A DNA stretch of 63,479 nucleotides, filler included, from Choristocarpus tenellus KU-1152 (Eukaryota; Protista; Phaeophyceae): NCBI GenBank assembly GCA_964200185.2. It is 10 parts of 10 records of this genome, joined end to end, with 100 filler letters (N's around TTAATTAATTAA, not from the genome) between each part and the next. Parts side by side here need not be neighbours in the genome. Positions count along the whole stretch, not along the records: positions 18,865 to 28,273 come from CAXNAD020003698.1; 9 more parts are not named here. The stretch is one strand, 5' to 3'. Shown here in pieces: positions 18,865-26,300 of this stretch. A model generated the notes under the pieces. That model saw only the letters and a list, made by a program, of their open reading frames with translations, was not told the DNA's origin and did no database searches. A program made the position numbers and the translations under genes. The first letter of the stretch is position 1; each line of letters begins with the position of its first letter.

Positions 18865-18920
18865 CGGATGCCCCCTCACACCCCCCCCCCCACACACACA
18901 CACCCACAGATACTTTGACC
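18865..18920. mobile_element. MITE family A, end fragment at contig edge
   Basis: C-rich run followed by CAGATACTTTGACCC. Confidence 0.55.
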
Positions 18921-19442
18921 CAAATCCTTCGCAAATCTGTGTTAAATAAATCAGTTTCTATATGGATTATACTGCTATCTATTTTTAGTTTGCCTTGTGA
19001 CAGTAGTAGTTCCTCCCCTCTTTCTCTTACGCTACTGCGATGAAAATTTGAACGATTATTTTTCTTTATTTTTTGAGTTCCAACTCCCTGGTTCTTCGAT
19101 CAGCAAGCACAGGAGTAGTGGATTTTTTGAGGATAATTCTTTACACATAGTTATCATCTTTCATGTGTTCCAGAACAAGTGGTTGATTGGTATCCAATAG
19201 TAGCTTAATTTCTTATTACTACAGAGTGGTTATATTGGTCGCTCTATACTTGAAAATTCTGGTAAGGATAGTGTACTTCCTACAATAACAGGGTAGTTCC
19301 AAAATAAAAAATACTACAAAAAAAGGAGGTGCCTATCTTTTGAGAGGGGTGCCGTTGGGAATTTGATGCCCCTGTGACTGCCTTCTGGTACATATACCTA
19401 CTGTGATGTGGTTCTGGAGGGCAATTTGCACTAAGCATAAAC

Positions 19443-19623
19443 GGATCAAACTATCTGGGGGGTCTACACCAGGGTGTCCATTCGGGCACGTCAAGGAGAA
19501 GTGCACTTACATTATCCATTCGATGCATGCAACCAAATTCATCACCCAAAAATCGCGACATGGAAAAATAGGCCCCGAATGGACAGCCGCCACCCCCCCC
19601 CCCCCCCCCAGATACTTTGAGCC
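19443..19623 (-). mobile_element. MITE family A, full copy
   Basis: GGATCAAACTATCT..AGATACTTTGAGCC; internal sequence is the reverse complement of the 4-182 copy. Confidence 0.85.
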
Positions 19624-21473
19624 CAACACTTGCTAACTTGTGCAACCTTCAATCAGCATAACATGACCCTCTTGATGCGAAGACAACTTCCCCTTCGATC
19701 CCCCTGCTTGTTGTGTTTGTGCTTGTTTGAGAAGGTGTTATTGTGGGACGTCTTTCTATGGTATGCTCTTTGATAGATACTCCTTCCTTAGGCTTGACGA
19801 GAGGGATCGCCAGAGCAGTGTAGTGAGAACGCAGAAGAGGAGAGTGGACATGGATGTTGTTGGAACATACAAGAAGAGTCGAGGTAAAAGAGCCGATGGT
19901 ATACCCATTTCCGATGAGGAAGCCTTCTTTTTCAGATATAATCCAACCTCCAACGAAATATAAGCTAGCTAAGAAAGTGGCAGTGCAAAGGTTCAACTAT
20001 GTCATTATAAACCATCACATATAAGTTTATTCACACCAAACCTGCCCCAGCAGTGCGAGGAGGGTCTCATGCTACTACCACAATACAACCAGGGTGTTCC
20101 CACCCAGAGTCATCTCATCTTAGATGGAGATCCATTTGGACCCTTTTTGAGCACCTAACACGATTAAAGCCTGCCCTGCATCCCACTCCCATGTTGGAAT
20201 GGACCTACCCCTCCTTCGGAGGCCATGGCTGTACGAGAGGAGAAAATGTTTGCCCACAATACGTAAAATCGCCCTTCAGAGTGCTAGAAGCACATGCACC
20301 AGAAGTCAGTCAATGCTGCTGCCTTCAGCACTCGTACAATGATGCATGGATTTTTGGTCTCAACACGTGTGGAAGCTTCCCAAATATGTTGTTTGCACCA
20401 TGATGCCGACAGTGCGCTTGCACACACCTGTCACTCTATGCCAGAGCTTTATTTCAAGCGACAAAGCAAAACGTCGACACAACATAGCCCAAGAGCAGTG
20501 TAAAGCTAGGAGCTCGCCCCTCAACTCTCGCACATGATTCTCAATGAGTCCAGCACCAAAACACATATCTATTTGATTCAACCCTTGGAGCACACTGAAC
20601 GCATGTAAGGGGTTGCAGACATACACATAATCAAAATATCTAGTTTGGGGCATCATCGGCGATCAACCCCCTATGTGATAGGGGAAGGCTTTCCTTTGGT
20701 GAGTCTAAACCAACATTTCTCGGCATAATGTAACCCCTAACCCTAACCCTAACCCTTGAACCAACAATAAGTGGTCCTGCACCTGACTTATATTTCAAGT
20801 CACATCTAATAATGCTGGACCAACAATTGGTATGAACGGAACCTGATTTTTTTTAACCAATCCGCATTGATACGCAGTTGATGTATCTCATCGTCATACC
20901 CCACCAAGTATCTCGTTGTGATACCCCACCAATTTTGATATTATCTGACTCTGGTATAAGAGCAGAGGATTGAAGCGACATGTTTGAAGTAGAGGAACTT
21001 GTGTTTTATATTTCTTTTTTGTTTTCCCTACTTCAATTGTAGATAAAAAAAATTAGAAATACCTCTACAACAAGTCACTCCCATTTGTGAGCTGCCATTT
21101 CTATATGTTCAAAATTCCGAAATGAGCCAAATCAATTGAGGGGTAGGCAAATTTGAACCCTTCTGTGTTCTAAGTCATCTTTCTTATCTTGTGCGGTACA
21201 ATATATTTCATTGCAATATTATGCGCAATAGTACATGCAAAATTGATATTCCCTCTTTCCACACACCATAAGGTGACACCACAATTCAGCAAAGGATCTT
21301 TCTGGAGTTGTACAAAAAATCATCCTTTCACCCTTTCTTGGGTGCAACTCTTTGCCTCTTCGTTGGTTTGACTCAATTTGAAAAATATTCAGAATTCGAA
21401 ACTTCAACCCCACAATATCTGTCTACTCTTAACAGAAATTATATATTGTAACGTTGATGAAAGGGGTATGAAA

Positions 21474-21555
21474 AACGACGTTGTAGAGTGGTCAAATGCG
21501 CCGGTTTCAAGCACCGGTCCCTCAGGGTTCGCGAGTTCAAACCTCGCCGTCGTTA
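21474..21555 (+). tRNA. tRNA-Leu(CAA), intronless, eukaryotic type
   Basis: Acceptor stem AACGACG/CGTCGTT plus discriminator A; D-arm GTA-GAGTGGTCAAA-TGC; anticodon stem CCGGT/ACCGG with loop TT-CAA-GC; long variable arm CCC-TCA-GGG; T-arm GCGAG-TTCAAAC-CTCGC. G37, no encoded CCA. Confidence 0.9.
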
Positions 21556-22634
21556 ATTTATGGTCCCCAGATTGCAGTTTAGGAGTATCCTTGCATCGTA
21601 CTCGAAGGCTCGAACTTCACAAACGTTGGAAATGTTTTTTGTCCTACGTATCATTCAATACAAGTTTTTGGTGAGTAGGCGTAATAATCTGTCTAGGACA
21701 GGTCTCTAAGATATCATTTTAGCGAGTGTGTCAAATTGTCGCACAATTTTTATAACTAGTGAAGAAAGATAATTTTACTTCTCCCTAAAATCGCAAGAAG
21801 GATATTATTGGTTAGAACTCTGTAAAATGAAGTTAGTTGCCTAAGTAATCGTGGATGATGTCATATTCTTTACGTAGGTGTCAATATATCGTAATAGGTC
21901 ATTTTCGTATATCAGATTGTAGCCAACACAACAGTAAAGAAGCCCTTTTCCGATTTGATGCATGCTAGAGTTGTGGTTGTATTCCTGGAATCAAAATGTC
22001 CAATAGGACTCACTCTTCTTCACAAGGAACTCGTTCATGACCACACCCCACTTTGACTTCGCCATGTGGGAGGGTATCATTTTGACGAGTGTGCAAGTCG
22101 TCACTAATTTTTATTCTGAATGGCACAGTTGTCGTAGAAATTTATCAAACACAATCGTCACAAGACTTAGTTCGTGGAAATTAGTTTTGATCATCAAATA
22201 GTTCACATGGGAAGAACTACACTTCATACACCTGTTGTGAACTGTACACCTGTCGTGATACACCACAAAAAAATGCTAGACCAAGAAGAGGGAGCAAAGA
22301 GCTTCACTGCCGATCGACTCTGAGCTTTTCTGTCACTGCCAAGTATTTTTACTGTATGGACTGTTCACGATCAACAGATGACGGAAATATTGGTAAAATT
22401 TGACATTGTCATACCGAGCGGGTTATACCAAGGAAGATCGTCTTGCATTCGTACAGATTATGCAAAGAAGGATTCCGATTGTGTGCATAAGGTAGGCCCC
22501 ACCTGGATGGTCAGGACCAGTCATCGATATATATCTGAGAACATACACATACCTTAAAGAAATTGTCTGGAGTCATCTAAGGTCAGTGATTCAGTCCATA
22601 ATTAGTGTAACAACTATTTTGTATGTCAATAGCT

Positions 22635-22924
22635 CTACATGCTTTTAAAATTAATAGGTCCTCCATACCAATCTGGATCTGAAACATCATTAGGTGTTGG
22701 TATAATTTGCTCATTATGACAGTTAATTGTATATATACGATTTAATCGCTTTGTTTTATTCACTCTCGGTGGCCTTCCTTTAGTGAAGACTAAAACCATA
22801 CCATTACTAGCCCACGAGGGACTCTCTTCAATATATCCCTTAGAATTCAGTCTCTCGGTGTTTTGCTGATTTATGGCTCCTGGTTTCATTAAGCCTATAG
22901 TCAACCATAATCACGACTAATTTT
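22635..22924 (-). pseudogene. tolB: Fragment of bacterial tolB (C-terminal beta-propeller end), Rickettsiaceae-like
   Basis: KISRDYG/(frameshift)TIGLMKPG..NTERLNSKGYIEESPSWASNGMVLVFTKG..NRIYTINCHNEQIIPTPNDVSDPDW. This shows the PD40-type P.WS.NG motif and the terminal SDP.W. AT-rich and intronless. Confidence 0.8.
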
Positions 22925-23371
22925 ACTTGCATATATCCCATATCGCAAAAAGCAATATCTTGTATATTTGTGGCTAGTTTCCAAATATCTTCATAATTAG
23001 AAATATCCATTGTAGATATAAAATGTAGTTGTTTACGTTTATTCTTAATAGATGATTTCTACTAAAGAATTAGTAGCAATAACATAATTTCTGAGTGTTA
23101 GTAATTTTGCAAGTGATGAACGTGTGCACCGCAGTGATAAATAGCATCTATATTGTGTACTAGCTTATTTAACGTATCAACTGAAAGTCCCAAGTTTTTC
23201 GAGTTTATATCTCTTTGCAATGGAATAATTCTACTACTATCAACACGTTGTGGAAAACCACCATTAATTAGTGAGTTATATAATTTTTCCTTTAAAAAAT
23301 GATTTTTTCTTACCCTAACTTTAGCAATAAATATTGGCATCAGTATGATTTAACAGGTCAGTCAACAAATA
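22922..23371 (-). pseudogene. Fragment of bacterial NRPS-type thioester reductase (extended SDR, NAD_binding_4) domain with stops and frameshifts
   Basis: Across frames: YLLTDLLNHTDANIYC / VR..RIIPLQRDINSKNLGLS..IDAIYHCGAHVHHLQNY* / TLRNYVIAT / KQLHFIST..GYMQVK (the GYxxxK catalytic motif). Confidence 0.75.
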
Positions 23372-26300
23372 TTATCTGACTGCCTCCCTTGGCACCACAA
23401 TCTTCTGCCTAATTCTTGAGCAGTGATGCTGCTTTACTATCCCATCAAGACGAGTTAACTTGGGTTGAAACATAGAGATAGGTCCTAATGAGAAACGAGG
23501 ACACACTGAGTGCTCTTGTCAAGTCCAACTCTACTAAGGATAAGGTTCGGTTCATACTGGGTAGCATAGCAGATGCGAGGGCGTTGTTCACCAGCATCTC
23601 TTTAACTAAAAAAATGCGCCAGTCCCAGTAGAAGCTTCAAGCACTCTTCTATGCTAGACGACGCAGAGCAGCAATATCTACCTTCGAAGTACCCTAAAGT
23701 GTCCTTAGACAAGTACGTGAATGCACTGCAAAACAAGACAAGGAGTGCACATGTTCTTATGCTACCTGTCAAGTTCTTAGAACCCTGGGAGGTGTTGGAA
23801 ATGGATCTGCAAGATGTAGGAGACACATCAGCACGAGGTAATGAGTGCTGTCTCTGAGTGTTGTCATATGATAGAGCGCCTAACAGATTTCCCTTCGCTT
23901 TTACAATGGTGTTAAAGGGTATGTGGTGCAGGAGGGGGATTATATCTTCTTGGCTGAAGGTACAGGTCAACCATGGACCTGCCAGTAATCCCAGGGATAA
24001 AGGAGGCGTAAAGACGATAGGGGGGTTGATCTTGGAAGCACTGTCAGAATTACAGAAACCATGGCCACAAATATGAGGCAAGTATGTATTTCCACCTGAC
24101 GCATTTACCCTAATGCCCTTCTTTCGAAATTGGTTGGGTGCAACCTATGTGCACATCTCGATACTGGTACCCTCAAGATGAACGATATTGATGGGGGGGG
24201 GCTGGATTATTTGATCCAGTGACATTATCAACTTTTCAAGGAAGTACAAGAGGCTCTGGAAGGTGGAAGACCAGTTAGAAGGAAAATGCTGCTATTGCTA
24301 GGGTTTCTCCCAGGTTCAAGCCCAAACTAAGTTGATAAAAGAATCGGACAACTCCATGCATGGTGTAAGGGTTGGCTGGAAAAGGGTTGGTAGTAGTTGG
24401 TTCATGAGAGTTAAACGTTTCCTCTTATGATACAAGGAGTTAGACCAGGAAGTAGTAGTCTGAAGGGAGGAACTAATTTCTCGCTGAGACTCATTTCTTC
24501 GTCAAGAACGTGGTTGACACACCATTCAATCTTGATATTAGGATTATTAACACAATCTATTAATTTAATTTACAAAATCAACAAAATTTATCATTACTAT
24601 TTCAAATGAAGACAGATGACTTTACCATAAACAAAAATGATCGAGGGGAGGTACAGAAGAAATTAAAGTACCTCCATTGATATATAATATTTTATTAAAT
24701 GTCTGATAGTATCATAATCTATTTCCCCACACATTCCTACAAGTCATGTAATTACCAACCCGTGTGTAACACGCCACAATAAATTGTTCGACACCTCGGA
24801 AAGGAGATTTAGGATGTTGCTCTTTCACTCTTTGACCATCCTCAGGGAATTTTCCGCCCCATTTTTTCTTCTGGCTCTGATCAATCCATTTTCCCTCAGT
24901 GTTAGTTGCGGTTTTCGTGGTTACAATACCGTGTTGGCTTCACTCTTGTAGCTTCACTCCTCTCCTTTTCTCGGTACCATCTTAACTATAGTTGATATCC
25001 CCTGCTTACATAGAGGTGAAAAAAATATTTGAATGTCGGACTTCTGGACTGCCATTTCCTATTTCCCGACCTTGACTTGCCCCCTTTACAACAAACTGTG
25101 GCTGATCGCCGAATTCAACGCCCTAACATCAATAACAAGTACGAGAATGAAGACCCACCAACTACCTCACCCAATCACATGAGAATGCAATATACCCTCA
25201 CCCAATCACATTGCCTAACCTCAACTTCAACCTGATATCTCAAAACTCCAACGGCAGGAAAGTTACTTCACATACATAAAATATGTTGGTACGTAGAACT
25301 TGATATCCTCTGATTCAAAACTGTAACACTGATATCTCAACTTCAACCTTCAACTCCTCCATCCTACTCTCTCGAATGGTTTTGTGTTGGTGTACGATTT
25401 TGTGACCCCTATGGAGATGACGCACCCAATTTCTTACAGAATGTGGGCCAACCATTTCTATTTGTTTCACTCCAAATAGAGTTTTGAACCTGTGCCGATC
25501 AATATCGTCCACATCGGACTAACAGCAACGAACTGATAACCTAATATTTTAACACCGATTGTTCGGTTATTCTCCGAGTCATCAGTGCGAGTGCACGCTT
25601 CTTATAGTTCCTGTTTGCCAAGCACGTACAGATGTGCAATGTTAGTCTCAAATTCTTTCACCTCTGGGGGTCCTCACCACTCGGGAGATCAATTTTTCAT
25701 GGCGACACCTCTCGCTGCCCATGCGCTACACACTATGAACCACACGATTGATCCTGATTAACTAGTGACATCTGAACCGATTACAATTGTAAATTCCAAA
25801 TCCTCTTGGTTCACAGCTCGACATAAATATTTTGTTAGGAATCATGGCCATTCGTTTGATCGGATTAAATCACAGTTTGATCAAAAACGAAAAACTTACA
25901 GCTGTTTTATCGATTTTTTCCCTTCTATATTGTACTGTTCGGAGGAGTTAAGGACAAACACAGGCACACAAACAACATAAGCACCACAAACCCCTCTAGC
26001 AATGCAAATAAGCCATGAATGTGTCCAGGTACTCCGAAAAAGGTGAAGATGGGTTCCTATATATATGTGTTGAAACATGGGATTGAATGAATTGTGCTCT
26101 TGTACAGTGGCAGGTTAGTTGCTGTGAAGGGGTGTCATAGAGCAATAATGAAGTGCTGGTGAATTAATGATGAACATAGTGACATGATGTGCATAGCCAG
26201 AGGTTATTTGGTAAGATGTTGTGGGTATTCCTTGAGACGGTCAAAGGAAGAAGTACATGCTCTGAGTAAAGGTGTTACAGGCGCCCCTCGATGCTCACCT

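Follow-up and report, generated by a model that had tools for sequence, protein, structure and literature searches.

We found that a short AT-rich stretch of the window (the whole 63,479-nucleotide stretch analysed here) is a genuine, if unremarkable, relic of an intracellular infection in the past. We read it, with a probability of roughly 0.8, as a bacterial mosaic from an intracellular Rickettsiaceae bacterium on the Candidatus (Ca.) Megaira side of the family, lodged in the chromosome of a eukaryotic host and decayed there as neutral DNA. The insert occupies about 740 bases (0.74 kb) at 22635-23371, within a 9.4-kb piece of non-coding, eukaryote-like DNA. It is the sole recognisable coding homology of that piece, and all its features lie on the minus strand. 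A sequence-only reading had proposed an AT-rich bacterial stretch with the limits 22635-23371; the limits of homology agree with these almost to the base, and the GC content, 0.319 in the insert, 0.386 and 0.455 in the 1-kb flanks and 0.412 in the piece as a whole, bears the description out. Two gene pieces make up the insert, and its features are listed below in order of position.

22600-22634, no strand: approximate left edge of the insert, an AT-rich tail 3' of the tolB stop (GC 0.26 at 22600-22649, 0.44-0.46 at 22400-22549).
22635-22904, minus strand: remnant of the 3' end of tolB, an open frame of 89 codons with its stop at 22635-22637 (TIGR02800, phmmer, tree).
22905-22915, no strand: joint of two unrelated gene pieces, set by tblastn end points (reductase homology runs to 22915, TolB homology from about 22901-22910).
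22915-23058, minus strand: reductase segment 3, with the '..HFIST..' motif and the catalytic Y-x-x-x-K region ('GYMQVK') (through-stop alignment to the NRPS reductase domains of loci L087 and L088; tblastx).
23059-23100, minus strand: decayed stretch with three in-frame stops, at 23098-23100, 23062-23064 and 23059-23061 (frame translation; the alignment passes through).
23101-23340, minus strand: reductase segment 2, the best kept, an 80-aa ORF (PF07993, TIGR01746, PDB 4u7w).
23324-23371, minus strand: reductase segment 1, in another frame, the '..LL......IYC' stretch just past the nucleotide-binding motif (tblastn, 56% identity over 16 aa; tblastx, many loci).
About 23371, minus strand: right edge of the insert (GC changes from 0.28 to 0.44 at 23350).

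The left-hand piece derives, judging from its sequence, from a tolB gene but is predicted not to encode a working TolB, a class that we took as the Tol-Pal beta-propeller protein defined by TIGR02800 and by PF04052 with PF07676. The ORF at 22635-22904 (89 aa) matched the TIGR02800 profile at positions 357-417 of 418 (E 2.3e-6, 26.8 bits) and PD40 weakly, and a phmmer search of 1.84 billion representative proteins returned 159 matches (best E 7e-20), the named ones being TolB. The string of motifs from which TolB had been recognised by eye lies within this ORF, and the identification stands. What is left is the last fifth of the gene, encoding the final ~81 residues of the beta-propeller with the PTP.D.SDP.W motif at the C terminus. 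Tblastn with 150 TolBs limited the homology to 22668-22910 and detected none 5' of 22910 in any frame; the TolB_N domain is missing. The remnant lacks the complete six-bladed PD40 propeller and falls below the curated cut-off (343 bits); its C-terminal blade and end motif are homologous to TolB and nest in the TolB tree. Unlike its relatives, it lies outside any tolQ-tolR-tolA-tolB(-pal) cluster. No pal or other gene was recognisable at the left edge (22600-22634), and the ORFs of Rickettsiaceae tolB loci, compared with the whole piece, had no match beyond the remnant. A PDB sequence search with the remnant found no match at E up to 1.

To whom the remnant belongs was seen in the database scan and then in the phylogeny. 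When one genome of each bacterial species was scanned with a search pattern, six loci came out on top (E 8e-29 to 5e-23, 47-60% identity); their genomes are labelled Rickettsia, Rickettsiales or unclassified alphaproteobacterial MAG. They were followed by a gap, the next matches (Rhodospirillales and others) having at most 43% identity and an E of 2e-15. With a full TolB query, the family of the best locus (L005) had as named members a Rickettsiaceae bacterium, a Ca. Megaira endosymbiont, Ca. Trichorickettsia mobilis, Ca. Tisiphia and Rickettsia endosymbionts. The nearest TolBs came from uncultured Rickettsiaceae, P0184 (Logan DRR496536) and P0205 (NCBI assembly GCA_024449895.1), and a further word search seeded with P0184 gave no relative nearer than those in hand. 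The remnant was 72% identical to P0179 and P0205 and 71% to P0184, the comparison with P0184 and P0205 extending over ~82 residues; the nearest available gene by nucleotides, L085, was 75.5% identical. P0184 and P0205 differ from it in being intact 440-aa genes within a tolQ-tolR-tolA-tolB cluster, whereas the window keeps the last fifth.

We calculated a quick TolB tree of 73 rows and a careful one of 44 (LG+C20+F+G4, rooted on Rhodospirillales). The remnant grouped with P0184 and P0205 (support 100/100) inside a clade of 20 rows of uncultured Rickettsiaceae (97/92), and this clade fell within a larger one that contains a Megaira-labelled sequence (100/99) and is sister to the Trichorickettsia/Tisiphia/Rickettsia-endosymbiont clade (100/100). 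Together, the tree and the gap in the scan show a tolB tail of Rickettsiaceae ancestry, apparently from the Ca. Megaira side of the family. The donor that the sequence-only reading had suggested is upheld in this way for the tolB piece only. Because classical Rickettsia, Orientia and Midichloriaceae were left out of the trees, the donor is placed to the Megaira side of Rickettsiaceae and not to a genus, and because the nearest sequenced tolB is just 72% identical, we concluded that the donor lineage is absent from public data. As a separate observation, P0205 and its intact tolQ-tolR-tolA-tolB cluster are carried by a 4.7-kb contig from an NCBI assembly of very large size (GCA_024449895.1); the contig probably belongs to a living Rickettsiaceae symbiont sequenced in a genome project on a eukaryote.

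The second piece (22915-23371) is not TolB but a pseudogene of a thioester-reductase (NAD_binding_4) domain of the NRPS/PKS type. The ORF at 23098-23340 (80 aa) matched PF07993 (NAD_binding_4) at positions 28-105 of 258 (E 3.5e-12) and TIGR01746 (E 9.6e-10), and its best solved relative was the MxaA reductase domain (PDB 4u7w, E 4e-4). Matches to the piece on plasmids were annotated as non-ribosomal peptide synthetases (~40% identity). For the through-stop alignments, natural homologues (3 plasmid loci and 69 metagenome loci) were compared with the window by local tblastn and tblastx. The natural reductase domains aligned as three collinear segments running from 23371 down to 22915, with one frameshift near 23320-23323 between segments 1 and 2, and segment 3 recurred as the collinear third tblastx segment in many metagenome loci. 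The reductase core, including the Y-x-x-x-K region, is therefore collinear with known domains, but its frame is interrupted. The N-terminal nucleotide-binding glycine motif and the upstream carrier and adenylation domains are missing; homology begins past the motif at 23371, and the DNA upstream of that point has a flank-like GC content and no match to the reductase queries. Judged by its length, domain content and frame, all of them deficient, the piece would not encode a functional reductase. The expectation of two frameshifted bacterial fragments was thus borne out for the reductase piece, with its one frameshift and three stops, but not for the tolB piece, whose frame (22635-22904) is open, with no frameshift and no in-frame stop. 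We had also considered the middle ORF (22843-23058) as an earlier TolB blade in another frame. This was rejected, since tblastn with 150 TolBs was blank there and reductase domains align through it; on its own, this ORF had no Pfam and no PDB match.

The two truncated, unrelated genes are fused head to tail in the same orientation, less than about 10 bases apart, and the residues preceding 'TIGLMKP' at the joint differ from the conserved 'GF' of the relatives. Among the relatives sampled, tolB comes after tolQ-tolR-tolA and has no reductase gene in its neighbourhood, which argues that the fusion is secondary. Both pieces would nevertheless come from the same donor in one event, given their adjacency, their orientation, their shared AT-richness and the published NRPS/PKS clusters of Megaira. 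The GC content of the insert (0.32) matches that of the donor-clade loci (0.25-0.37). Published Megaira genomes have 28-35% GC, with one marine outlier at 40.5%; Ca. Megaira genomes carry NRPS/PKS clusters, and their GC is also given as 31-35% (PMC10132079).

The origin of the reductase piece from Rickettsiaceae is argued from adjacency and composition only, and this leaves some room for a mosaic of two sources, in which the tail of tolB came from a Rickettsiaceae symbiont and the reductase from another bacterium or from an NRPS/PKS-like gene of the host, the two being joined by end-joining or rearrangement. Searches that stopped short of the long Rickettsiaceae NRPS proteins turned up no relative of the reductase piece from that family. 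A word search and a single-protein metagenome scan yielded no candidate, a profile metagenome scan yielded relatives at 31-54% identity only, and plasmid tblastn hit no Rickettsia plasmid. The best matches (40-54% identity) were unassigned metagenome loci and unrelated NRPS genes of cyanobacteria or Agrobacterium, and the ESM Atlas held only short NAD_binding_4 fragment clusters, which are uninformative on origin. Two sources would also fit the lower GC of the reductase part (0.291, against 0.367 in the tolB part) and the arrangement around tolB in the relatives. Against them, the pieces abut within ~10 bases in one orientation and are both far AT-richer than the flanks, Megaira genomes do have NRPS/PKS genes, and the blank for Rickettsiaceae reductases weighs little when long NRPS proteins were beyond the reach of the search. 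We consider a double origin unlikely and retain a single Megaira-side donor for both pieces.

To see whether the insert is continuous with its surroundings, we checked its edges in contigs of two further samples (runs X1 and X2), both from one study. One contig crosses the entire insert:

21528-24209, no strand: 2684-base contig of run X2 crossing both insert edges (26 differences, 4 gaps, depth 31.8).

The neighbouring contigs of X2 had depths of 28.7 and 40.6. In X1, the left edge was crossed by a contig at 22325-22845 and the right edge by one at 22847-23857, both at depth 10-12 like the flanks. Run X3 of that study, from another organism, had no reads over the stretch and says nothing on continuity. 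Single-nucleotide differences between samples amounted to ~1%; those inside the insert were at 22638, 22846, 22926, 23067, 23244 and 23247, with an additional A at 23063, and the others lay outside. The insert is physically continuous with its flanks at single-copy depth, and its polymorphism is like theirs.

Because contigs span the edges at the depth of the flanks and with ~1% SNPs, the insert is neither an assembly chimera nor a live contaminant, in agreement with the sequence-only reading, which had argued against contamination by a live bacterium from the stops and frameshifts. Eukaryote projects do include bacterial contigs from the clade of the remnant, as the 4.7-kb contig of P0205 illustrates. 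For the insert, a chimera or contaminant would have to reappear across both edges in two other samples, and it would have to carry two truncated genes, one of them with stops and a frameshift, at a junction unseen in the sampled relatives; we regard this as hardly tenable.

In the summed contig depth of X2, the bins at 22671-22837 reached 66.8 against 31.8 in the neighbouring bins. This doubling reflects one extra contig of at least 90% likeness that overlaps part of the tolB remnant; candidates for it are an allelic bubble, a further copy, and the tolB gene of a live relative.

The DNA around the insert points to a eukaryotic nucleus. No flank ORF was longer than 159 aa, and 17 flank ORFs were without a Pfam match. 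A dispersed high-copy repeat at ~21123-21355 reached a summed depth of 550 in X1 and 2765 in X2, against 10-32 around it, which is 50-90 times the depth of the flanks and sums to ~90 copies. An interstitial telomere-like tract, (CCCTAA)3.7, lies at 20735-20756. From the lack of recognisable coding sequence, the high-copy repeats and the telomere-like tract we infer that the flanks are nuclear DNA of a eukaryote.

Two other hosts were weighed against this evidence. The first is an organelle, that is, a mitochondrial contig with rickettsial-type DNA as in the fern Haplopteris ensiformis, whose mitogenome contains Holosporales DNA (PMC10027690). The flanks of the insert would suit it in being non-coding, with ~41% GC and a tRNA-Leu(CAA) gene, the single feature that Rfam recognised on the piece. 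However, the 9.4 kb contain no mitochondrial gene, intron or rRNA, the depth of 10-32 against 550-2765 in the dispersed repeat is a single-copy nuclear pattern with a nuclear repeat family, and the telomere-like repeat is present; a mitochondrial location is very improbable. The second is a co-sampled eukaryote, such as a protist living with the named species, to which a real contig might belong. Megaira-side Rickettsiaceae are typical of ciliates and algae, which makes such an owner conceivable. Against it, other copies of the repeat families of the piece were on contigs of similar depth (17-28 in X2), and ~90 copies of the repeat imply that the genome owning the contig is a main component of both runs. 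A co-sampled owner is accordingly improbable, if less so than an organelle.

Several smaller features of the flanks were recorded on the way. The tRNA-Leu(CAA) gene lies at 21474-21555 (ARAGORN; Rfam 47.3 bits) with no T-run just 3' of it, and X2 has a further copy with 7 differences on another contig, which indicates a gene family or a tRNA-derived repeat. The repeat at 21123-21355 has no clear terminal inverted repeats, and a diverse family is indicated by its numerous loose ends and by skips of 53-117 bases inside it. A second repeat at 25343-25500 reached a depth of 37 in X1 and 134 in X2, and one X2 contig joins 21264 to 25379, linking the two repeats. Around the telomere-like tract, 20727-20763 was skipped as a repeat in read mapping. 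The flanks also differ structurally between samples, X1 having 16 bases inserted after 21583 and 11 bases missing at 25170.

For the age of the transfer we turned to the decay of the two pieces. The ~150 codons of the reductase contain three stops and one frameshift; the 89 codons of tolB contain neither. At the 37 columns conserved in at least 90% of 60 Rickettsiaceae TolBs, the remnant was changed at 10, including a 2-residue deletion, against a median of 1 and a maximum of 6 in the ingroup. Its terminal branch was 0.43, compared with 0.04 and 0.14 for the two nearest rows, and part of this length may belong to the unsampled donor lineage. The pN between the remnant and L085 was 0.126, no higher than in the bacterial pair L085-L005 (0.15); synonymous sites are saturated, and dN/dS is accordingly no guide to the time since transfer. 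Since the tolB frame is open and pN is no higher than between bacterial relatives, the decay is modest. A very rough estimate of neutral change since insertion would be ~5-10%, which fits the break counts of both pieces. On this rough footing the transfer was probably not recent, and the term 'old' comes from decay alone. The pattern is what neutral decay after a transfer would leave, and the insert is likely to be without function.

We propose that DNA of an intracellular Megaira-side Rickettsiaceae bacterium reached the host nucleus, where bacterial fragments may have been end-joined at a chromosome break. Fragments are captured at chromosome breaks by end-joining in organelle and Wolbachia inserts. 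Alternatively, a longer insert could have been shortened by later internal deletions. Either way, the outcome would be the tail of tolB fused to a piece of an NRPS/PKS reductase, with both drifting since.

Transfer from endosymbiont to host is a known class, and the insert has its hallmarks, in that the tolB remnant nests in an intracellular bacterial lineage and the edges are continuous at host depth. In the Volvox case (2015, PMC4324946), DNA of a Rickettsiaceae endosymbiont, its donor identified by phylogeny, was likewise found in the nuclear genome of a eukaryote and read as the record of an infection possibly since lost. The Volvox insert is ~9 kb long, with four gene-like regions syntenic with the symbiont, whereas here two non-neighbouring truncated pieces share 0.74 kb. 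The Wolbachia transfers of insects and filarial nematodes (PMC2882956) are similar in that fragments of an intracellular alphaproteobacterium, mostly decaying pseudogenes, reside in chromosomes and were detected by junction-spanning sequence and host-level depth. Their donor belongs to Anaplasmataceae, in contrast to the Rickettsiaceae donor and the one tiny insert seen here. The fern Haplopteris mitogenome (PMC10027690) shares short, truncated and variably degenerated alphaproteobacterial coding pieces with coverage continuous into the flanks, but the recipient is mitochondrial and the donor Caedimonas-like, in place of nuclear-looking flanks and a Rickettsiaceae donor. The insert is smaller and more fragmentary than the Volvox, Wolbachia and fern cases.

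The insert would record that the lineage owning the contig once housed a member of the poorly sampled Megaira-side radiation of Rickettsiaceae. Once the host is established, it could be used as a presence/absence marker to date the association and to guide the search for a living symbiont. A bolder possibility, which we put forward only tentatively, is that the insert is the tip of genome-wide integrations from an NRPS/PKS-bearing Megaira-side symbiont in a host lineage not known for such bacteria. If so, copies shared by or absent from related species could date the infection, and the extra X2 contig at 22671-22837 could represent another copy, or a tolB from a still-living descendant of the donor.

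Two further observations concern the 9.4-kb piece and the relatives of the remnant. Near the start of the piece, C-rich ends ('CCCCCC..AGATACTTTGA') occur at 18885-18929, 19443-19462 and 19587-19631 as direct copies and also as an inverted pair of 20 nt with a spacing of 141 bases; the arrangement resembles a small inverted-repeat element, the MITE of the sequence-only reading. Among the relatives, three Logan runs (SRR23998786, SRR23998798 and SRR23998799) have a related tolB (L002, 908-2025; also L003 and L004) broken into two ORFs, one of 123 aa with TolB_N and one of 216 aa with the propeller, apparently a tolB in decay within a bacterial genome.
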